This document shows, piece after piece, positions 1,452 through 60,441 of a stretch of 64,000 nucleotides of DNA (its first letter is position 1; the number at the start of each line of letters is the position of its first letter). Source of the stretch: Parasitella parasitica NRRL 2501. Taxonomy: Eukaryota; Fungi; Mucoromycota. Below the pieces are notes generated by a model. The model saw only the letters and a program-made list of their open reading frames with translations. It made no database searches and had not been told where the DNA came from. The stretch is taken from NCBI GenBank assembly GCA_025201805.1, contig MU619380.1, positions 11,884 to 75,883 of the forward strand, given 5' to 3'. A program made the translations under genes and the position numbers.

Positions 1452-4199
1452 CTACGTGGTTGAAGAAGTCGTTGTTTGTTGCATTTCACGCAGTGAGCAG
1501 GAGTTACATAAAAGAGGTTCATCTGGCGAATACTCTTGCATATCCACTGTCGATCCATCAAATCTACGGAAACACGAGCTGCACACAGTTGTGTCGTCCT
1601 TGTTGCCAGCCTAAAAAATACACGGATCAGTTTATGAGCTAGCGGCAAGGGCAAGAGACATTTACCTCTTTGGCTCTTTGAATCAAGGTATTCAGATCGT
1701 CTCTCATCTTTTTGTTTGTGATTCTCAACTGATGCAGTTCATATTGCCAGTTGGCATCTCTTGCGATATCCAATTCATCGACCATCCTTTCGACTGTGCT
1801 CACACACTGAGGAGTAGGCGTGATGACGCCGTTGCTGTCTACATTGGGCAACGACAGGTCTGCTCGTCCCTTCTTTTTCACATCCGGGTCCATGGAGACA
1901 AACACCGATTCTTCGTCTGTCAGAGCGCTTTCTTCCCCAATGACCTTGGTTTGCATCAAAACAAACGAGGGCTGTCCTTGCAATGAAGCGTTGCCGTCGG
2001 GATAAAATGTCGTTGCCACCATCACCTCTACGCCTGTATTGTCCAACAGGGCATGCTTCAGATACACTATTTTGCCCTCCTTCACCTCTGCTAGGGCACG
2101 CGTCAAATCTGTCGTACGGTTGCTTCGCAGTAGCTGATACAGTGAAGTGCCGATGATTTCTGATGGAGGTGATCCCAGCACATTCGCTACAGTCCAGCTG
2201 ACATACAGTAGTAAGCCGTCTGCGCTTAGTTTTCCCCAAAATTCGTGGTCCTCCATACCTGGCATTTCGTTTACAGTAGTACGTGTGGCATGCGCTTTAT
2301 TGCCTACAGCCAGTGCGCTACGGGGCAGCTGGTATACAGGACGCTCACGGCCTGACAGCACGACATATTTACGGCCACGGCCATCTTCGTTTCGTAATTT
2401 GCCACAGCATTCGATCCACATGTAGCCCGAGTTTTTTCTTCGCACTCGGTATATCAGGTTGACTGGTTCAGTAGAGTGGTTGGAGGACTGCTTGAGTTCT
2501 CGCATGACTGTCGTGATGTCGGAGGGATGGCAAATAGCTTTTAGTGATTTGCCTACTAGTTCAGAGGACTCGTACTCTAAAATTTGAGCCGTCGAATCAG
2601 AGCAGTATAGAAAGATGCCCTTGATGGTCAACACATGGATAAAGTCCGGGCTTTGGTCCAGCAATAATTCGTGCCAGCAGCGTCTGAATTTGCCCTCATC
2701 GGTACTCGCTTCTTTAATCAGTGTTTCCACATCCATCGGCGGTTCTGCGTCTGTTTGTTGCTGTGATGGAACAATCGCATTTTCTGGAGCTGCGATGCCT
2801 GTGTTTTTGTTTGATAATGCTAGTGAATGGTGTTGTTGTTGCTGTTGCGGTTGTGGCTGTTGTTGCTGTTGCGGTGGTTGTGTTGGCTGTGTTGGCTGTG
2901 GTTGTGAGGTGTTTGAGCCGTACATGGGTTTTGGGGACACGGGTCGAGTCCATTCTTTGACGGGTTCTGTCATGGTATCTGCATTTATACTAAGGCCAGC
3001 TATATATATATATATATAAGAGTACTGGTTTAGTCGAATGGTGGTTGTGTGTAATGCAAGTTCACCTACCTCGAATAGATGGAGGGATCGTCGAACTTCG
3101 ATAATTAACCGTATAAGTGCCATCTACATAGCAATGACAACATGAATAATGTGGCAGAATGTATGGTTGCTGGTTATACCTTTCATGCTTTGAAAAATGG
3201 AATTGGGCTGCTCTACCAGATCGACTTGCAGGCCAATAAAGTAATCAATCTCTTCAGAAGACTCCCAGGCTATTGGTACCACAGTTAGCAAATTGACAAA
3301 TGGTTGGCCTGATTTCCGGTAATTGATAATGCTGGATTGCGATTCTTTGCCCTGAACAATGTGGGTTTTTATATGGTATACGGTGGTATTGTCTGTGTAT
3401 TTTCTTCTTGATCCGATAGCTACTCTACCGTCGGGTGCCTGGAGAAATCTGCAGTTTCTGCCAATCACTTCGCTGGGAGCATATCCCGTTAATTTTTCAA
3501 ACGTGGGCGAGGCGTAAACAAGAGGAAAATCGTATTGTTTTGCATCAACCACAACAAATGAGCATGATAGATCAACGGGTCCCAAATTGATCTGGGGATT
3601 TGGTCTGGCAGAGAATTTTTTTTTTTTTTTTTTTTTTTTTNNNNNNNNNNNNNNNNNNNNNNNNNNNNNNNNNNNNNNNNNNNNNNNNNNGCTGTTAGTA
3701 TAATATTCTAATCTGTCTCCTACGGGCATTACCTGTTAACTACGCGCGATAGTATAGAAAGCATATCGAATCCGGTGTTGGCGTACATCCCAGAGTATCG
3801 GCCACTGTCGCCTTGATTTGAAGCGAGTGACGGTATGGGTGCAGATGGTATAGCGGGTGGTGGGGCAGACGGCTGGAAAGCATTCATGGATGTCGTGCCT
3901 GAAGGCTGAAGCATTGGGTGTTGCTGCTGATGCTGCTGCTGCTGTTGTTGTTGATGTATAAGCTGCTGCTGCTGTTGTTGTTGTTGTATAAAGTTTGGCT
4001 GTTGCGCTGGCAATGTGGACTGGATTGATGGCTGCCGTTCTGAATGGCTGCGTGGATTATGTATTGAGGTGTTTGCTTGGTTGGTCATTAAGCCGGCCTG
4101 AAATCCAGTGAAAGAGAACAACTTGTCTGTAGATGGCGGCACATTGCTGCTCTCGTAAATCTGAGGATTGAATTGGCCCAAGGATTGAAACGGGTCCAT
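1452..4199 (-). CDS. wc-1b: White collar-1 family blue-light receptor (LOV + 2 PAS), Wc-1b/WcoB-like, with an atypical C-terminal Cys4 motif
   Basis: LOV signature GRNCRFLQAPDG, NRPNPQINLGPVDLSCSFVV, PAS-B (ICHPSDITTVMRELK) and PAS-C. Manually spliced exons 4199-3733, 3604-3180, 3123-3070, 2999-1666 and 1610-1452 all join in frame. The paralog assignment is an inference from the non-canonical finger. Confidence 0.9.
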
Positions 4200-4488
4200 T
4201 TTCGAGCGAGCGAGCGAAAAAAAAAAAAAAATAGAGTAAGTTAAGAAAGGGGAAATTTGCTTTTTCTCTCTAAAAAAAAAACAAGTTGAAGGGGTCGATC
4301 CATGCACATGGAAATAAGACAGTACAAAGAAGGTGATGTGTAGGCGGCGGCTGCTTTCAAGAAGGGAAGGGAGGAGCCAATGAAGTTTCGTGACAATTCA
4401 TTTGGTGGCATGTTGTTGTACGCAGTGGGCTCTTTATTTTTATTTTTTTTGTTTTATTACTTCTCTACTACGCTTGGTTGACATCGCT
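4200..4488. promoter_or_regulatory. Short divergent (probably bidirectional) promoter between wc-1b and the DPP gene
   Basis: Only ~290 bp separate the two divergent ATGs. Pyrimidine/poly-T tracts lie before each start. Confidence 0.5.
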
Positions 4489-25640: not shown

Positions 25641-26254
25641 GGAATTCATTGGAACCGAGCCTATTGCTTTGACCACCATTATATTATAAAAATCACACTA
25701 GTCTAAAGTTGATAAAAAAAAATATGATCAGTGGTTCTAGAGTATGCACAGAGGAAGTGAGTTATACAAATCACAGCACATCAAGTGCTCAAATAAATAA
25801 TATGATATCATTCAATGCGCTCACTAGTAACAAGGTCATTTATTGTAATCAAGGCAATTATCTTTACAGTATGTAAGCATCAATCTAGGCTGATACCATA
25901 CTATTGCTCTTTTGACAAAAATGATGTCAATAGCTCCATGTCAATATGGTTAGCGTATGCTTAGTATTTGACTCATGAGCGCATCAACAACCGAAATTCA
26001 ACTGATCTTGCTCTTTTTTTTTTTTATATCATACATGTATATTACAAAAATGACTATCCGTCAAGCCAAGGAATAGATAGCTGTGATACCCGGTGTAACA
26101 CCCCACGTCTACTGTACATGAACCAGCACAAACGATCTTATCTTTGTAAAGCTTAAAAATCGATTGTGTGGGAAACCCCGTAATAAAAGAGTAGTAAATT
26201 TTGCTGATAACGAGTTTATTATAGATACATCTGTGTCGATAAAGAGCGACAGCC

Positions 26255-27164
26255 TTAAAGATTAGGCAAGGGAATGCCTGTGCGGATGTGCTCTGTGCGA
26301 TTCCACCAGGCACGGATTCTTTCATCGCTCAAAACTGCAGTTTCAAAAATCTCAGGTTTGAGTGCCACCAAGAAGGTCAGATGCGACAGAAGGACCACAT
26401 CAGCCCAGCCAGCTAAACACACAAGATATATAAACATCTTTTTGTTAATGCACGCACTTGCATATAAAGCACGTAAAGCTTACGTTTATCGCCTGTTAAA
26501 TACGGATATCCTGCAAAATGAGAACTAACAAGAGCAATGCCGGTCTTAAGCTTAGCAACATTGTCCTTTACATCGCCAGCAAACTGCTCCAGCGATTTGC
26601 CTCTCATTGATGATTCACGGTCTTTTCTGAACCAATCCTGCAGCTTCTCATCGCCAGTAGAAGCATGAATGTCGAGTAAAACTATTCTGTAGACCGAGCT
26701 ATTGATGCATTTGTCAGAATAATGTAAAAAGAACTTGTGAAGAGCAGTGTTGCCGTGGAAGAGAGAGGGATTATTGGGGAACTGCTCCTCCAGATAAACT
26801 GCAATGTCCCAAGAATCCACCACGGGTTTATCATTATGGACAATGATTGGCACTGTTGGTCTGGATGAGCTTTTGCTATATATTGCATAGTTGGATCGAA
26901 TGATTGGCATTGTAGTATTAGAGCAAACTTACGTGGTTGGAGGAATGATCTCTTGAATATTAGCAAAATTTACCCATTTTGTTTCATAGGGGATGTTCTT
27001 TGTTCGGCGGTGAGTCAAACAGCCCAAGTTTAATAGGTATACAATTGCATGCCTACCTTCAAATTGAGTGCATATCGAGTCTTGCATGTATTAGGCGACC
27101 AGACCAATCCTGGCTTGTTGAGCAGTTCCAGATCATAAAATACGAGTTTGTCGTTTTGGGGCAT
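26255..27164 (-). CDS. Glutathione S-transferase (GSTFuA/LigE-like, WSPN motif)
   Basis: WSPNTCKTRYALNLK, TVPII...VVDSWDIAVYLEEQFP, YLTGDK..WADVV and IRAWWNR. Three GT-AG introns. Confidence 0.88.
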
Positions 27165-27513
27165 GGGAAAAAATATAGGAGAAGAGGAACAGCTACAACA
27201 ATTATACAAGTGTTTTACCAAGTCAGAAGGCTGTAGATTGGCTCAATGGACAAATTGATAAGATTCCGTCGAATCTGATGATTGGCTGCCTGCTATTGCT
27301 CACTTATCATTAATTGGCCTCCACATGCATTTTCAGTTCCTTGAACTTCCGTTGTATAAAAATGTTAAAAATGGCTACATGAGATCAGGTATCTATAGTG
27401 TATATATAGGGGCGAGGTATTTTTGAACTCTTTTTTTCTTTTTTTTTTTTTTTTTTTTNNNNNNNNNNNNNNNNNNNNNNNNNACTTGAAACTTTCTTGC
27501 TCCACTCTGCAAC

Positions 27514-28068
27514 ATGTCTCTGCCTCCACTTGTCTTTTTTTCTCTTACCCCAGAAGAGGACGATGATTCATACCCGACATCTCCCCAAGATTACCAGGAA
27601 GAATGTACCTGGATCGACGATTCAGAGTGTCAAGAAAACCTGTTTCAAATTGTCTCATTAACACCAGAGGAAGCCATTGTTGACAAAGATAACCACATTC
27701 AAACATCATTCAAACTGTTTTTTGAAGAATTGGGCTATCTGACTGAAGAACCAAAGCCTATTGACCCGAATCGTGATTACGAACAGGAGGCAAAAGACCT
27801 GCTGAGCCAACGTGATAAGAAAGTGCGTCAAAAGCATGTCGATCTTTTTTGTTTACCTTCATTAGATTCCTCAATGTCTGGATTATCGTCTTCATCGTCG
27901 TCAATTCATCATGAGCACCACATTATTGATACTAGATCACCACATTATATGGGTCAGCCCCATCCACATGTCAATCACCATGGCAACAAAGAGCCGAATG
28001 CATCCTATCATTATGGAAATTATCACCATCACCAGCATCATCAATACAGACCAAGCAGATTACATTAA
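27514..28068 (+). CDS. Hypothetical acidic/His-rich protein (184 aa)
   Basis: Single uninterrupted ORF with good ATG context (caacATGtct), TATA-like and poly-T elements upstream and an AT-rich 3' flank. No recognisable domain. Confidence 0.65.
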   Translation: MSLPPLVFFSLTPEEDDDSYPTSPQDYQEECTWIDDSECQENLFQIVSLTPEEAIVDKDNHIQTSFKLFFEELGYLTEEPKPIDPNRDYEQEAKDLLSQRDKKVRQKHVDLFCLPSLDSSMSGLSSSSSSIHHEHHIIDTRSPHYMGQPHPHVNHHGNKEPNASYHYGNYHHHQHHQYRPSRLH

Positions 28069-28206
28069 TTCCAACTTCCCCTTATATATATACATATATA
28101 AATACACAATCCTGCTATATACCCCTCTTTTATACATATCAGAATATGATAATTTTGTTTATTTCAATAAAAAAAAAAAGAAAAAAAAAAGAGAGAGACA
28201 CCCAAA

Positions 28207-31110
28207 TTAGTAATTTTCTTTGGCTGCCTTTGCCAACACTTCCCCGGTTCTCTTAATTACGCCCATATGGACAATGCGATCACCAGCCATGGCGACGGGG
28301 TTTGAGCTACGACCTATAACCACGCCTGTACATGGCGAGAAATACTCGTCAATGACATTGCCAAACATATTCTTGATGCGTGCTATGATTTCTCCTTTTC
28401 GAACAAGTTTATTTACGCCAGGATAGACCTCCAATAGACCACCTGTTTTTGTATAGAGCTGTCAAATGGAGTAGGTGAGCTAGGGGGGTCTTGTTCATAA
28501 CAATTGCTTAAAAAAGAAATTTACCCAAAATCCCCTGGAGCACAGCACTGTATGAGGGGGACCATTCAAATTCTCTTCGTTTACAAATGCTTGGATTTCA
28601 GTCATGTCGATATTTTTCAAATCATACATTGCAAAATGGTCTAAAATACGCATCACTCCCATAAACGACCACTACATGTATCTAAGTGTTGGTATGAAGC
28701 TTGCCAAACATGGTGGATGTGCGGATTCACTTGCCTGGATATAACGGTCTTGAAATGTTTGCGGATTGCCTATTTCAACTGTAATGGCTTTGATACCGCG
28801 TGCGGCTGCAGCTGATCTTAACGTGCCTAGATATCAAAACGTATCAACAGAGAAGACTATGGCTTCTGTATTTACGGCATCACTTTACCATCTTGACCGG
28901 AATTATGTAGCAATATTTGTGGTTGTTGCAATTTAGCCATTTTGGCGCCCACTGGATCGTTCTAAAAGTGTGATTAAAAAAAAAAAAAAAATGAGGGGAG
29001 CTGGTCGATGAAAAAAGTGCGTTGTGTACAAACCATGTCTGCTCGAACATAGTATGAATTTACTCTGCCAAAGCTAGCTGTATGCAGGTCAATCATATAG
29101 TTGAATTGAGATATGATCTTGTTCATGAGATGATGCGAAAACACTTGACTAGAGAAGCCATCTTCTTTACCCGGGAATTGCCGGTTCAAGTCTCTGCCAT
29201 CTGCAAACTCCCGCTGAAACCTGAGGAAGCCCCACACATTAACGCAGGGCACAGCAACCACAGTACCTTTCAGTTTGTTGACATCAATCTGAGAGATGAC
29301 TCTACATGTACAATTTTTTTTTAAAAAAAAAAAATTGGGGGGGGGGAGGCTTTTGTCTATATGTGAGCAAGGTAAATCTTACCTGTGAATACATGGAACG
29401 CCATTCAGCTCATTTCCGTGTACAGCTGCTGTAATACCAACAACAGGACTATACATATGCATCATCTATTATTAATTGAAACCTTCTAGAGTCGTTGACT
29501 TACCCGTCTTCTGTACCACGGCAAACAATAATCGGAAGTTTTAACCACTCGCTCAAGCCCTGGGTCATGATCTTGATCCACGCAGTGCTTATGGTGTTCA
29601 GCGGGAATTCATTGACTTCCAGCTTGTCTCGAGTCACTGGTGGTGGCATGTCTGTGTCTTTGTGTACTAACGCAAATGCAGGCGGCTCGTAGATGGCGTT
29701 TGGGTCAAACGACTCCATATTGATCAAGCTATCGCGACGCTCCAACCCCACTTTTATGGGTTCTTTGGCTACATGCAATGCATTGAATTTATTGTCAAGT
29801 TCTTGTGTGGGTGGTTGTGCTGCGGCGAGTGTTTTAATGGCACCGTTTTCTTGCTCTATTGGCACAAGCAGACTAGGACGACGATTGGATGGACGTCTCT
29901 GACTAGGGACAATACCCTCATTGTTGTTGAACCTTTTTGGAGGAGACTCTTCCTGTTGTTGCTGCTGCTGCTGTTGCTGCTGTTGTTGCTGTTGTTGCTG
30001 TTGTTGAGGAACTTGAGATTGCTGTGGTTGCAGAATGCCGCCGAATGTTTTGCCTTCTTCAATTTGGATGATGACAACCGTTGCCTCTGTAAATGAGTAG
30101 AGCATAAATAGCATGTTTTACATATTTACTGCTTTGTGTGCATACCAACTCCATTGAAGGCATATTGTCCTACTTGATTTGTGGCATTCAATAAAATGCT
30201 GGTAGGGCTTGCATCTTCGTCGCGTTCCACAAACAGGGTTTCTCCCTTTTTTAGCTCAAACTTTTGACTATGCGCATGGTTTTCATCAAGAATGACACTA
30301 ATGAAGCCCTCTACCACATAGACAAGTGCGAATGCGCCAAAGAGCATGTTCTTGCCGGAATCAACATCGCCCTGCAAATCTGTCTCAAACGAGCCAATTT
30401 TTTCGATTCTTACCTGAGCCTTCCCCAATTCGCGGCGAAGCATGAACTGCAGGCATGCAACAGGCGAATTTGTCAATTTGCATGTCGTGGCCCTAACGTG
30501 GTTTATATTAAATTATTACATTTCTTGTAATGCATATACACACAATGCACCCCCTTACCATTCACCATGCCACGAGTACGGAAATAATGGCTGAATCTTG
30601 GTAAATGACTCTCCTCCTTGGTGCGACAGTGAAAAGTATGCCTTTGAGTCTTTCTCTTCATCGGTAGGCAGAATCACCGTAGTGCTTGTGGTCATGGATT
30701 AGCCTATTTATCATTTTTTTTNNNNNNNNNNNNNNNNNNNNNNNNNNNNNNNNNNNNNNNNNNNNNNNNNNCGATGCATGACTCACCATTCGTAGCCAGG
30801 AAATACCGAAAAGTTACAGTTGGCGTGCATGGTGTTTGTGCTAAACCGCCAAAAGAACTCTTCTTTGATAAAGTCCTTGTCGGGCGGGTAGATGGCAATT
30901 TCGTCAGTCGTGCCTAGGCCATTCTTCCACTGTTGGGAATGATAGTCTGTCCTGTTGCGCGGGAATGGATGAGTTTTGGCGAGGGAAGCCCTATTTTTTT
31001 TTTTCAACTTACTCGGGTTTTAAAACGATGGCTTGTATAAGCGTAGGGTCTGGCGACTCTGATTGAAGCAGTGGCCCTTCGTTGTCCGATTCCTGTTCTT
31101 TGCGATTCAT
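28207..31110 (-). CDS. Fusion protein: N-terminal HutD (Ves) bicupin, polyQ linker, C-terminal M14 succinylglutamate desuccinylase/aspartoacylase-family deacylase
   Basis: HutD motifs [27 protein letters not shown] and LQFMLRR. M14 motifs [22 protein letters not shown] and TVEIG, plus a C-terminal barrel-sandwich ([26 protein letters not shown]). Splice junctions from the ATG into the deacylase ORF were checked and are in frame. Confidence 0.85.
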
Positions 31111-31230: not shown

Positions 31231-32683
31231 CTAGGCAATGGCAGATTTGGTCGAGGTCGTAAAAGATCCACCCAATGGCAAAACCCCAAAATCCGCTTCA
31301 TTAAGCCCACGTTGTTTCATTGCAGCTTCCAGTCTTTTGGGGGGATCCTGCACAGGCTCATCAGTCAGTACAAACGTGCCCCAGTGGATAGCGATCTACA
31401 CATGTATTTAGCGTCCTGTTTGCATCGGTTCGTGGGAAACTTACTGATCGCCGGCTCTTGACATCTCTATGGAGATCAACGGCATCTTCGGGAGAACAGT
31501 GCACCGTGGACATAAACCATCTGGGCGAATATGCGCCAATGGGGATCAGAGCAAGATCAAAGGGCCCTATCTTGTCGCCGATCTCTCTGAATGCAGGACA
31601 GTGGGGCAGTGTATCCAAGTACTCGTAGTCGTACTCTGATTCAGGCTTTGTGCTCGCAGGAACACTGCGATAGCCTGTGTCACTAGTATAATTGTCTGCA
31701 TGTGAGTATTCTCCAGCATTTGTGCACGCACACGCAAGAGATATCATTTACCCTCCGAAAAACACCTTCCCTTTGGTCGCATTCCCCTCTGTATCCAATG
31801 CCTCCACACACCACGAAGACCACAGCGTCTTGTCTTTATCAAACGGGGTTCTGCCAGACTGATGCTGGGCAGGAGTACACGTCAATCGGATCTGCTCTTT
31901 CGTCTTGTCCTTGACAACACCGACATTGTCCCACCAGTCCAGCTCGATAACGCGATCGTTGCCTGCACTATCCAGCTTGTTTGTCAGCGCAAACCATTTC
32001 TTGTTGCCCAAAGGAACATAGAACTTGCAGTCGGGATACAGCTTGTCCAGCTGCTTGATGGTATTGGCGTCCATATGATCGTAGCTATTGAATAAGGAGC
32101 TTGAGTTTCTGTGTTTGTCATCCATATGCACACACACTTTACTGGTTATGCGAAATGACAACTGCATCTACTGCAGGCAATTCTGATAGCTTACATGGCG
32201 GCTCTGTGTATCGCTTTGGCCCTCCAAATTGGACGGGAGAGCATCTGTCAGAGAAGATGGGGTCGAAAAGAATATTGAATCCTCTCAGCTGCAGCAGGAC
32301 GCAGGCACTGACATCTGTTAGCAAATCAAAAAACATCTCATTCAAGAACCCTCCCCCCCCCCCACTCACTGGCCCATCCAAGTCGCTGTAATGTCGTCAG
32401 TCAGCTTTCCGTCCTCGTTCTTTTTGATCAGCGTCCAGTCGATGCCAACTTGCTGGGGCAAAGTTGCAGACGTGATGGCCTTCTCAGCAGCACCCAGATT
32501 CATTGTCGTTATCAATTTGAAAATAGAGGTAAACGAGATGGGAGCAGCGGATGGCCAAGGGTTTTTAAACTTGCTCCCGTCATGATGGTCTTTCTGCGCT
32601 TGGGCATGCACGGGGATTGATTGAGCAGTAAACTTTGCCATTATTGCAAAAGCAGCTGTAGTGGCAAATGCCCTTTTAAGCAT
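31231..32683 (-). CDS. NAPEPLD: N-acyl-phosphatidylethanolamine phospholipase D (metallo-beta-lactamase fold; Fmp30/NAPE-PLD-like)
   Basis: [61 protein letters not shown] and IHWGTF. Confidence 0.92.
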
Positions 32684-32893
32684 TCTATTGACAAAAAAGA
32701 AATACGTATTTTTTTTATTTTCTTTTTTATACAAAAAATAATTCTTTGGTGAGACTCACAGTGGTGCGCTGTTTCGGCCCCATTTTATTTTATTGTTGCT
32801 CAAAAGTGAGAAAGGTGGTATTTTTATAAATTTATATATATAAACAAATTGACGGTTAAAAATACAAATGCAACATACAGTAAATATCATGTC

Positions 32894-52223: not shown

Positions 52224-52871
52224 ATGTCCTCAAATAAATTTAGCCTCGGTAGCCACTTTTTAAGTAAAAAAAAGACAGAAGATTTAACAAGCTTGTTTAC
52301 AAGCTTCGATAAAGACAAGAATGGAAAAATCTCTCGCTCGGAATTACAAGACATGTTACATTCAGCCGGAATAGAATCGACTATGGTAAATGTTCTTGTT
52401 TTCTTTAAAAGGTATAAATGCTTAGCCGCTAACATGCTTCTTTTCCTTCCATTTGTTGTTGTAAAGACTTATCCAGAAGAAAGCCAAGGAGCAGCAGGAG
52501 GGATGGATTTCGAGGAATTCGCTAAACTGATGAGACCCACACTATCAGACCCACACCGACTTTCAAGTAAGCAAATAGAGCTAAAAGAAGCCTTTGACGC
52601 ATTCGATAAAGACAAAAATGGCTCCATTAATGCAGTCGAACTGCGTGCAATGATGGAAAAGCTGGGAGACAAAATGACGTTAAAAGAAGCCGAAGAACTG
52701 ATTAAAGATGTGGATTTGGATAATAATGGTACTGTTAATTTTGAGGAATTTTGCATTATGATGGGTGTGCAGCAACCAAAATCAGAGCCCAGGAAATCGC
52801 CAGCGTCTCCGCATCATGATCGTAAACGCTTCTCGTTTTTTAAAAGGCTATTTTATAGCCACAGACAATAA
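52224..52871 (+). CDS. Calmodulin-like EF-hand protein 1
   Basis: EF-hands DKDKNGKISRSE, DKDKNGSINAVE and DLDNNGTVNFEE; EF2 is degenerate. In-frame intron ~52386-52466. Basic C-terminal tail. Confidence 0.9.
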   Translation: MSSNKFSLGSHFLSKKKTEDLTSLFTSFDKDKNGKISRSELQDMLHSAGIESTMVNVLVFFKRYKCLAANMLLFLPFVVVKTYPEESQGAAGGMDFEEFAKLMRPTLSDPHRLSSKQIELKEAFDAFDKDKNGSINAVELRAMMEKLGDKMTLKEAEELIKDVDLDNNGTVNFEEFCIMMGVQQPKSEPRKSPASPHHDRKRFSFFKRLFYSHRQ

Positions 52872-53109
52872 AGTTACATGTGCGATTGGTTCTTATTATG
52901 TTGAACTTTATTAGAAGTCTCTCATAGAACATTACTATAGAAACTGTCTATAAATTTACAAGGACTCCGCCTATGTTCATGGATCGTCGCCTTGAGTGGT
53001 TCCTGTTTTTCAGGAATCATCCTCGTGGATTGAAACTTATTATAAAAAGATTTTGACTTTTGTCGATACCATCCTCTTTTCTTTCTTGATTATATATTCT
53101 ACATCTAAA

Positions 53110-53655
53110 ATGACCCCAAATAATTACTACCTTCAACTTGGCATTACTGCTGAGGAACTGAGCACATTACAAGAAGCTTTCCGATTATATGATACCAAGC
53201 AAAACGGCTACATTAGTGTTGAGCAATTTTCTCATATCTTGCTAGAGGTTGGTATTGTCAAGCCTGGCAACATTATGCAGGAACTGCAGCAAATTATTAA
53301 ATCTGTTGATACCAACCATGACGAAGTGATTGATTTTGATGAATTCGTGCTAGCCATGTTCCGGTACATGCCACATAATACTTGCCAACAACAACAACAA
53401 ATCAACTATAATACTCAACCGCAACAAGCATTTTCAGAAAAAGATACAACAGACGAAGAACTGCTTGCCTGCTTTCAATTCTTTGACCAAGATCATGATG
53501 GTCGCATCAGCCAAAAAGAGCTTGAGCAAGTAATGATTCGCTTTGACGCACATTTAACACCAAAAGAATTGAAAGAAATGATGACCACAGCTGACATTAA
53601 TAGCGATGGTTTCATTGATTTTGAAGAATTCAAACAATTGTTACCGCCTTTATAG
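53110..53655 (+). CDS. Calmodulin-like EF-hand protein 2
   Basis: Intronless. LQEAFRLYDTKQNGYI, DTNHDEVIDFDE, a Gln-rich linker, DQDHDGRISQKE and DINSDGFIDFEE. Confidence 0.9.
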   Translation: MTPNNYYLQLGITAEELSTLQEAFRLYDTKQNGYISVEQFSHILLEVGIVKPGNIMQELQQIIKSVDTNHDEVIDFDEFVLAMFRYMPHNTCQQQQQINYNTQPQQAFSEKDTTDEELLACFQFFDQDHDGRISQKELEQVMIRFDAHLTPKELKEMMTTADINSDGFIDFEEFKQLLPPL

Positions 53656-58491: not shown

Positions 58492-60441
58492 CAGTAGGTG
58501 GATTAATGTTCCGGATGTTTTGCAAAATTCGCTAAAACAAGATGTAGATCATGAACAAATTATCCAATCATTACAAAATTAGCGTTATTCAAGAGAGAAA
58601 ATAGTCTTTAATATACTATAAAAAATTTATCTTGATTGGTCAACTGGGATCGAAATAATTTGGAACTAAAATTCATGTGTGCATCCGGACCATTTTTCAG
58701 GGTACTCAAACGTAAATGGAAGCTCAAGGAATCTCATGGATTTCTCTACCAAAACAGTCACAACTAATTAGTCATCAGTACAGAAGATATAAAAACTGTT
58801 TTAGTTTATTTTTGGTCTTTTCTTTCTTTCTTTTTTATATCAAACTCGCATCTCATTGATAATATATAAAATGGTACGCTCTTTGCCTATGGACACTCAA
58901 AATAGTNNNNNNNNNNNNNNNNNNNNNNNNNNNNNNNNNNNNNNNNNNNNNNNNNNNNNNNNNNNNNNNNNNNNNNNNNNNNNNNNNNNNNNNNNNNNNN
59001 NNNNNNNNNNNNNNNNNNNNNNNNNNNNNNNNNNNNNNNNNNNNNNNNNNNNNNNNNNNNNNNNNNNNNNNNNNNNNNNNNNNNNNNNNNNNNNNNNNNN
59101 NNNNNNNNNNNNNNNNNNNNNTTGGTCTTTTCTTTCTTTCTTTTTTATATCAAACTCGCATCTCATTGATAATATATAAAATGGTACGCTCTTTGCCTAT
59201 GGACACTCAAAATAGTATGAAGAATTAATTGCAATCTGGTTATTCTTATTCACAAATTATGAAACGCGTTCCTGGAGTCAAAAGATCAACTATTTCTGAC
59301 TATAAACGTAAGTGATTTCCCAATTTGCAGTCATCGGTGCCTGGTCGACGTCCTATTTTGAAAGAAACATCTCGAAATGCCATTCGTAAAAAGGTAGTTA
59401 TTGGTGAATTTAAGACTGGAAAAGAAGTAAAAACATACTTGAATGATCTTGGAATCAAAATTGGATATTCAGCATGTCTTAAATTACTCAAATCATTGGG
59501 ATTTCAGGCAGCCAAAAAGAAGAAAAAGCCTATGCTGAAGCCTAATCATAGAAAACAAAGACTTGAATGGGCCAAAGCTTATCGCAGCTGGACGAAAGAT
59601 GACTGGAGAAGGATGATTTTTCTCTGATGAAACCAAAATCAACATCTGGGGCTCTGATGGTATCAAGTACTGCTGGAAAAGACCAGATGACAAACTGCAA
59701 TTTCACCACTTAGATCTTACAGTCAAGCACGGTGGTGGTAGCCTCATGATGTGGGGTTGTATAACATACGATGGTCCTGGATACGCTTGTCAAATCTTCG
59801 ATGGCACTATGAAAAAGGAAGACTATATACATATACTGGAAACAGCCATGATGGATACTTTAGATTGGTATGGTTACGTCCCGGAAAAAATCTATTTTCA
59901 GCAAGACAAAGACCCTAAACACACTGCAAAGGTTACTAAACAGTGGTTTGCGGACAATAACTTTAATGTTGATTGGACTTATAGCTGGCCAACTCAAAGC
60001 CCGGACCTAAACCCTATTGAACACGTCTGGCACCATCTAAAATTAAAATTGAGCTCATATCCCACCAAGGCTAGAGGAGTACATGAATTGTGGGAGAGAG
60101 TAGAAGAACAATGGGCTACATTTACCAAAGAAGATTGTCAACGATATATTGATAGCATGTCTGCAAGAATTGAGGCAGTAATCAAAGCTAAAGGTGGTCA
60201 TACTAACAACTAAAGTGATTTTATAAGCACCCTGAAAAATGGTCCGGATGCACACATGAATTTTAACCCCAGATTATTTCAACCTCAGTTGACCAATCAA
60301 AATAAAACTTTTTTCATTTTATTAAATTTCATTTGCTCTCTTTAATGACGTTGATTTCATGTTCATCGGATAACTTGTTCATAATCTACATCTTGTTTTA
60401 GGGAATTTTGCAAAACATCCGGACCATTAATCCACCTACTG
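58492..60441 (+). mobile_element. Tc1-like DNA transposon (DD37E), full length, transposase inactivated
   Basis: TA target duplications at 58490-91 and 60442-43. Termini CAGTAGGTGG...CCACCTACTG with ~210-bp imperfect TIRs. Transposase 59181-60213 carries SDETK, KHGGG..MWGC, QQDKDPKH and SPDLNPIE, with stops at 59226 and 59313 and a +1 frameshift near 59620. Confidence 0.95.

Follow-up and report, generated by a model that had tools for sequence, protein, structure and literature searches.

We analyzed a 64,000-nucleotide stretch of Parasitella parasitica NRRL 2501 contig MU619380.1 (hereafter the window) and followed up a gene on its minus strand, running from 31110 to 28207, that encodes a HutD bicupin joined by a linker to an M14-type hydrolase. 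We found that the hydrolase belongs to a subfamily whose gene is paired in bacteria with that of an unannotated ATP-grasp ligase, and that this fungus also encodes the ligase. Our preferred reading, to which we assign a probability slightly above one half, is that the fusion protein is a zinc-dependent M14 amide hydrolase that breaks down what a dedicated ATP-grasp ligase makes; the HutD bicupin would serve as a sensor of small molecules and the linker, through phosphorylation, as a second control. The basis of this reading is the gene structure, the folds, the intact catalytic residues, the bacterial pairing, the fungal ligase, the exchange of HutD for SPX and an excess of protein kinase A (PKA)-type sites. 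Bacterial data and one fungal genome give good support to the pairing itself; from these data we infer the substrate, the HutD ligand and the regulation.

Pairing of the hydrolase with an ATP-grasp ligase

The closest stand-alone relatives of the hydrolase domain (45-53% identity) come from Saprospiraceae and other Bacteroidota, Myxococcota, Planctomycetota and Bdellovibrionota, in agreement with the initial annotation, which had noted a bacterial look in this half of the protein. We clustered all open reading frames (ORFs) within 5 kb of the hydrolase gene at 81 bacterial loci. A gene for a ligase of ~480 residues recurred at 61 of these loci and a GshB-like ATP-grasp gene at 51, both mostly co-directional with the hydrolase gene and frequently overlapping. 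The ligase was present in every bacterial genome with the hydrolase (42/42). We also sampled 121 Myxococcota and 201 Bacteroidia genomes, drawn regardless of whether they contained either gene, and assigned hydrolases to the subfamily at an E-value of 1e-90 or better, the next subfamily scoring 1e-54 or worse. The same 19 of the 121 Myxococcota genomes carry ligase and hydrolase, 102 carry neither and none carries one alone (Fisher p 1e-22, uncorrected for kinship). Among the 201 Bacteroidia, the same three carry both, 198 carry neither and none carries one alone, so that the pooled samples contain 22 genomes with both genes, 300 with neither and none with a single one, counts that are inflated by operon linkage and kinship. 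From these data we conclude that the ligase and hydrolase genes move as a unit in bacteria.

The ligase matches no Pfam or NCBIfam family, including the GshA family PF08886. Its structural model (predicted local distance difference test score (pLDDT) 92) has an ATP-grasp fold that is best matched by the GshA-like structure 3k1t (Z 17.4, root-mean-square deviation (rmsd) 4.0 over 325, template modelling (TM) score 0.61), with further matches to ArgX, LysX, glutathione and glutathionylspermidine synthetases (Gsp-synthetase-like), RimK and TTLL11. This unannotated family comprises 3,796 matches.

In P. parasitica, the ligase gene lies on the plus strand of another contig (C120, ~26906-28574; L093:5907-7575), has two exons and one intron, and encodes a protein (E 7e-143) that shares 54-55% identity with the ligase of the bacterial operons. 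It sits among fungal genes, flanked by glucosidase-like and permease-like ones. Its Atlas cluster has 85 members, 86% of them eukaryotic and mostly Mucoromycota, and additional copies are encoded at three metagenome loci that contain introns. We considered whether the ligase might be this organism's glutathione synthetase and found this unlikely: the fungus has ordinary GSH1 and GSH2, and Myxococcota have an ordinary GshB elsewhere. As ordinary glutathione genes exist separately in both, the ligase/hydrolase module is not the glutathione pathway.

Two further observations concern the bacterial neighborhoods. Polyamine genes, named by sequence appearance as arginine-decarboxylase-, agmatinase- and deoxyhypusine-synthase-like, lie near the module at 9 of the 81 loci, in Saprospiraceae and other Bacteroidia (among them L013, L016, L020, L031, L065, L072 and L086); this could be synteny, or it could hint at a polyamine as the amine substrate. 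In several Myxococcota, genes of the next-nearest hydrolase subfamily neighbor RimK-like ATP-grasp genes (G126:C2:539251-540880, G131:C362:13668-15297 and G137:C11:93161-94787, among others).

Structure of the fusion gene and its domains

The gene, first read from a six-frame translation, has 11 exons, 738 codons and a single terminal stop when its frames are joined. Its ten introns (nine GT-AG and one GC-AG) are 55-102 nt long. Searches were run with single exons or with homologues, and the joined model served to check the reading frame, to make local comparisons and to build the tree. Contigs from one run (X7), whose RNA origin is presumed and which omit exactly the introns, give nine of the ten splice joints, and three DNA-type or soil runs contained no splice joints for this gene. 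These joints bear out the initial annotation's proposal that short exons splice into one frame.

Exon 1 (31013-31110), with the start codon at 31110, gives an N-terminus of the same length as in orthologues and is followed by an intron of 61 nt (31012-30952) set by an RNA joint, which replaced the 22-nt intron of our initial model. Exon 2 (30787-30951) encodes the N-terminal HutD motifs WKNG (30918-30929), WR and FSxFPGY, is covered by RNA and matches PDB entries 1yll and 5fcc. Intron 2 (30786-30685) contains an assembly gap (N, 30722-30771) at a poly-T run, where DNA contigs end in poly-T on either side and the RNA joint from 30787 to 30684 passes over the gap. Because the gap is located within this intron, it leaves the reading frame untouched. 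We also rejected a gap artefact as the cause of the fusion, since the gap is intronic and bridged by the joint. Exon 3 (30559-30684), with RNA joints at both ends, continues the HutD domain, and exon 4 (30146-30492), supported by RNA and homologues, encodes the remainder of cupin 1 and all of cupin 2.

Exon 5 (29504-30086), also seen in RNA, is a single open frame that runs from the last HutD strand through the linker into the start of the hydrolase. Exon 6 (29383-29448; PF24827 E 0.0011) carries the zinc ligands H450 and E453 (29409-29420), and exon 7 (29034-29301) carries R492, N501-R502 and the third zinc ligand, H535. Exon 8 (28889-28961) is in frame and has an RNA joint at 28825/28888. 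Intron 7 (28962-29033), which precedes it, is missing from the joint table; record 9 has 75 letters between exons 7 and 9 that fit the 73-base length of exon 8. Exon 9 (28735-28826), also covered by RNA, encodes R579 (28816-28818) and E593 (28774-28776) and is followed by the GC-AG intron (28672-28734), for which there is an RNA-type contig joint. Exon 10 (28525-28671) is bounded by RNA joints, and exon 11 (28207-28458), likewise supported by RNA, encodes a C-terminal beta (hybrid) subdomain as in DoeB, identified by alignment with 6twl and by structure match, and ends with the stop codon at 28207-28209.

At the CAG repeat in exon 5 (29946-30011), RNA and DNA contigs both break, and no contig from this species covers both domains. 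The RNA joint between exons 4 and 5, together with complete fusions on intron-free contigs from relatives (one with 88% hydrolase identity, and Acanthamoeba), rules out two separate genes and supports a single transcript for both domains. We conclude that the fusion gene is real.

The hydrolase half matches the catalytic family PF24827 (AstE_AspA_cat) above its cut-off with exon 7 (47.7 bits, E 1.7e-12), and full-length homologues score 90-102 bits. The accession first proposed for it, PF04952, now covers only the C-terminal hybrid domain and gave no match. Alignments of fungal, amoebal and bacterial sequences show no variation at the zinc ligands (H450, E453 and H535), the oxyanion arginine R492, the carboxylate clamp N501-R502, the catalytic residue E593 or R579, in keeping with the earlier assignment to AstE/AspA-type M14 deacylases with an intact active site. 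The hydrolase in the model of an orthologue resembles DoeB, 3cdx and CphZ (Z 21-26). Identity in this domain is 60-75% from Mucor to chytrids and amoebae and 30-49% in HutD, which thus diverges much faster.

The HutD half likewise behaved as first described. Exon 2 alone scores 53.1 bits for PF05962 against a cut-off of 25 (E 5.7e-14), exon 4 matches weakly (E 0.005) and the orthologue P0067 reaches 80 bits. In the model of the Mucor circinelloides orthologue (P0052), residues 27-259 form a confident bicupin that superimposes on Pseudomonas HutD and PA5104 (5v00, 5fcc and 1yll) with Z 23-25 and rmsd 1.6-1.9. Across 73 fusions, the motifs WKNG, WR, H and PY show little or no variation.

In the same model, the linker is disordered (residues 263-386, pLDDT <50) and separates the two domains; linkers range from 74 to 180 residues. 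The polyQ stretch that the initial annotation described as the linker is present as 18 residues (29953-30006) and is private to this lineage, the longest run among the 73 homologues being 8, and we rejected it as a functional part on this ground. PKA-type sites ([RK][RK]x[ST]) occur 129 times in the aligned linkers, against 19 expected from shuffles, and are found in 61 of 73 linkers, which are related and not independent. The protein studied here has three: two RRPS sites (S312 and S317; 29872-29898) and one RRDS site (S365; 29728-29739).

Distribution of the fusion and exchange of HutD for SPX

A search with exon 4 found a full-length relative, and a search with that relative returned 120 listed proteins, of which 110 carry both Pfam domains (40 weaker matches lie beyond these, and the counts that follow are among the matches listed). 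At least 110 proteins thus have both HutD and the hydrolase. Fusions were found in Mucorales, Umbelopsis, Bifiguratus, Calcarisporiella and many chytrids, with none among the listed matches in Dikarya. The nearest protein is another P. parasitica entry, 95% identical in both domains. Most Mucorales have two fusion copies; the paralogue in this genome (contig C4, start 24883, minus strand; L005) has 733 amino acids and five introns, four at positions common with the window gene, to which it is 49% identical in HutD and 73% in the hydrolase.

Acanthamoeba castellanii XP_004338117 has the same architecture in a gene with 12 introns, so the fusion is not fungus-specific. A transcript labelled Tiarina fusa also encodes a HutD-hydrolase and groups with the amoebal sequences; it may come from a culture contaminant. 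In Rozella, we found a degenerate HutD-like frame just upstream of the annotated hydrolase (E 2e-8), an exon that the Rozella allomycis annotation omits (L095:7115-7906). The presence of the fusion in Mucoromycota, chytrids, Rozella (degenerate) and Acanthamoeba indicates that it is ancient. In a quick, unrooted maximum-likelihood tree of the hydrolase domain, with Shimodaira-Hasegawa-like approximate likelihood ratio test (SH-aLRT) supports only, HutD-type eukaryotes fall on one side of a long branch (SH-aLRT 100), and the grouping of all eukaryotes reaches only SH-aLRT 82. We found no introns common to Acanthamoeba and fungi. The simplest reading of these sequences and of the unrooted tree would be that the fusion arose once, early, and was then passed on vertically in fungi and amoebae. 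We rejected bacterial contamination and a recent transfer on the basis of the ten spliceosomal introns, the four positions common with the paralogue, the fungal neighbors and a tree that tracks fungal groups.

In a sister group of eukaryotic hydrolases from this subfamily, SPX takes the place of HutD in the N-terminal slot. Such fusions occur in the Kickxellales Linderina (P0241) and Coemansia (P0265) and in Acanthamoeba (XP_004335670; P0410, L094:8001-9665), which has both HutD- and SPX-type hydrolases. The basic ligand-site motifs, which in SPX domains bind inositol polyphosphates, are kept in Linderina and Coemansia. As two unrelated domains share this slot, SPX is a known sensor and the bacterial enzyme needs neither, we propose that the slot is regulatory.

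We found no paper on SPX joined to an M14 hydrolase, nor on the HutD-hydrolase architecture, its genes or its ligase partner. The initial annotation likewise knew of no characterized protein with this architecture, though the architecture is visible in database annotation already; our main finding is the ligase/hydrolase module with exchangeable putative sensors.

Within the window, the fusion gene lies between a NAPE-phospholipase-D-like metallo-beta-lactamase gene directly upstream (31361-32734, minus strand) and a GST-like gene downstream (26029-26910). These two neighbors give no sign of a pathway common with the fusion, and a local gene cluster around it was rejected; the hydrolase loci of Linderina, Rozella, Batrachochytrium and Acanthamoeba likewise contain no ligase gene. 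Elsewhere in the window are a White-collar-1-like LOV/PAS gene (1639-4307, minus strand), identified from ORF translations and broken by an N gap at 3641-3690, two adjoining calmodulin-like EF-hand genes (52224-53655, plus strand) and a Tc1/mariner-type transposase fragment (59746-60213, plus strand) at the AT-rich window end.

Proposed function, alternatives and comparison with known systems

In the mechanism that we propose, the ligase would use ATP to couple an amino acid to a carboxylate, which may be gamma-Glu, beta-Asp or another acyl group, and the hydrolase would cut this amide and free the amino acid, with the alpha-carboxylate held by R492, N501 and R502. The invariant R579 would favor an acidic leaving residue (Asp or Glu), so the substrate is probably an acyl-amino-acid of the acyl-Asp/Glu type. 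Control would be exerted through the operon in bacteria; in eukaryotes, where the genes are unlinked, a fused HutD or SPX domain would gate the hydrolase. Binding of a ligand to HutD, which may be an N-acyl-amino acid and perhaps the pathway metabolite itself, and phosphorylation of the linker would keep synthesis and breakdown apart and prevent a futile ATP cycle. More tentatively, we suggest that the ATP-grasp family makes an undescribed amino-acid conjugate or a storage or stress peptide in Bacteroidota, Myxococcota, Planctomycetota, amoebae and early-diverging fungi, and that its breakdown by the hydrolase is placed under sensors of N-acyl-amino-acid or nitrogen status (HutD) or of inositol pyrophosphate and phosphate status (SPX).

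Several observations weigh against this proposal. The position of R579 is Thr in E. coli AstE and Asp in DoeB, and its correspondence to ASPA R168, which binds the aspartate side chain, is presumed. In fungal HutD domains, the Arg that follows FxG[YI][DE] and the Asp/Asn in DFN, which bacteria and amoebae keep, have been lost, and the WKNG motif is degenerate in the Rozella and Tiarina-labelled copies. The orthologue model predicts no fixed contact between the domains (predicted TM score 0.53). In P. parasitica, the window gene, its paralogue and the ligase gene lie unlinked on contigs C144, C4 and C120, and one query for the GshB-like third gene did not find it. Co-occurrence of ligase and hydrolase among eukaryotes is shown by this one genome.

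The unlinked genes and the third gene not found, together with duplication of the hydrolase in Mucorales against a single ligase found, would also fit a eukaryotic hydrolase that has lost its coupling to the ligase and scavenges N-acyl-amino acids in general, with each gene kept for its own reasons. We rate this as decidedly unlikely, given that conservation of both proteins (60-75% identity of the hydrolase across Mucor, chytrids and amoebae and 45-53% with bacterial ones, 54% identity of the ligase with bacterial ones) points to an unchanged substrate. An alternative that keeps the ligase/hydrolase pair and replaces its substrate by a Glu or Asp tag on proteins or an amino-acid polymer, which the hydrolase would trim, as with RimK, TTLL glutamylases and cytosolic carboxypeptidases, seems unlikely to us. 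M14 enzymes do remove C-terminal residues, the ligase has fold matches to TTLL11, RimK and ArgX/LysX, and the next-nearest hydrolase subfamily (E about 1e-45) has RimK-like neighbors; however, the best structural matches of the ligase are small-molecule ligases (3k1t, glutathione and glutathionylspermidine synthetases), the operon has no conserved substrate gene, and the closest solved hydrolases (DoeB, CphZ and 3cdx) are small-molecule enzymes where their function is known.

The near invariance of the HutD motifs and the presence of the cupin enzymes AerE and BacB among the fold matches could instead mean that HutD has an enzymatic activity of its own, such as that of an isomerase or cyclase, and acts in sequence with the hydrolase. 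This is quite improbable, as the bacterial module works without HutD, the non-catalytic sensor SPX takes the same position in the sister group and HutD has diverged much faster than the hydrolase. The initial annotation had suggested yet another role, in which the protein would stand in for HutG as a deformylase of the histidine pathway and its HutD domain would bind N-formyl-glutamate. Deletion of hutD in Pseudomonas increases hut expression, and HutD has been tied to formylglutamate, with its function called unknown (PMC8034625). The fusion hydrolase retains an Arg that would suit an acidic leaving residue, so that N-formyl-Glu may be a side substrate, and 21 of 28 module-bearing bacteria have urocanase. 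However, a whole-genome search of P. parasitica found no urocanase (two models), histidine ammonia-lyase or formylglutamate amidohydrolase (HutG, PF05013), and imidazolonepropionase was not found beyond distant amidohydrolases of at most 41 bits (cut-off 298). A draft assembly cannot prove absence; yet HutH, HutU, HutI and HutG are all missing together, and the same search tool recovered the intron-split GSH1 and GSH2. Hut intermediates are thus without an evident source in this fungus. Of the 42 bacterial genomes that carry the closest hydrolases, one has HutD, encoded on a different contig next to an orotate-phosphoribosyltransferase-like gene; none of the 81 loci has it, and no hut gene recurs near them. 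As urocanase is also absent from 7 of the 28 module-bearing bacteria, the fusion does not mirror the bacterial hut arrangement. The expected co-occurrence with hut homologs was not found, the HutG-replacement idea is largely refuted already and very improbable, and ligand regulation of an enzyme was the better half of the original functional proposal.

A separate observation concerns E. coli K-12, a species without a hut operon, in which ves, a HutD-family gene, is located two genes downstream of astE in the same orientation (L108:4363-6924). This may hint at N-acyl-glutamate binding, or it may be chance.

If an enzyme under ligand control is the correct reading, HutD would be a portable allosteric sensor domain, and the fusion would offer the first enzymatic read-out for a HutD ligand. 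HutD has no settled function (PMC8034625), and its fusion to an assayable enzyme, together with the SPX stand-in, makes the sensor hypothesis directly testable, all the more as the genetically tractable Mucor circinelloides and M. lusitanicus carry the genes. A large ATP-grasp family with an obligatory hydrolase points to a missing metabolite or modification in predatory and polymer-degrading bacteria, amoebae and early fungi.

Compared with known systems, the fungal HutD shares the bicupin fold, PF05962 and the N-terminal motifs of Pseudomonas HutD (5v00, 5fcc, 1yll) and E. coli Ves, and differs in being fused to a hydrolase, in a genome where no hut pathway was found, and in two altered pocket motifs. 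SPX-regulated enzymes and transporters are similar in that the sister hydrolases bear SPX in the same N-terminal slot, which HutD occupies in the window gene. The catalytic constellation of ASPA (H21, E24, H116, R63, N70, R71 and E178; PMC10998430) is mirrored by H450, E453, H535, R492, N501, R502 and E593. The fusion hydrolase nevertheless scores 19-24 bits with the aspartoacylase model NF002601 (cut-off 180) and 16-21 bits with the AstE models TIGR03242 and NF003706 (cut-offs 170-306), and has no ast operon context. The best structural match is within the DoeB/EutE group, 3cdx (Z 26.0, about 20% identity), and includes the C-terminal hybrid subdomain, although the DoeB/EutE model TIGR02994 gives 44-60 bits against a cut-off of 402.7, DoeB has Asp in place of Arg579, and no ectoine genes occur in the bacterial loci. 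As its scores lie far under the model cut-offs, the fusion hydrolase is none of AstE, aspartoacylase or DoeB.

Other modules keep a ligase together with a hydrolase that reverses it, namely GshA (PF08886)/GshB, RimK, glutathionylspermidine synthetase/amidase and TTLL with cytosolic carboxypeptidases (CCP), and the present pair resembles them in this respect; GshA supplies the nearest fold of the partner ligase, which lies outside its Pfam family. CphZ, an M14-fold enzyme that cleaves the beta-Asp-Arg bond of cyanophycin, was found through its gene neighborhood (PMC9974463). The fusion hydrolase shares with CphZ/AotO the fold (Z 21.5), the H-E-H zinc site, the catalytic Glu, the Arg and the Asn-Arg motif. 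It has 15-16% structural identity, where the published criterion for that group is >30% identity over 70% coverage (PMC9974463), and differs in bearing HutD or SPX, which CphZ is without, and in having the unannotated ATP-grasp family as its partner instead of CphA; no cyanophycin gene recurs in the bacterial loci. By analogy, we predict that the fusion hydrolase works like CphZ without being a CphZ, and CphZ, whose amide substrate is made by ATP-dependent ligase chemistry and which was itself assigned from gene neighborhood, is the closest worked precedent for the system described here.

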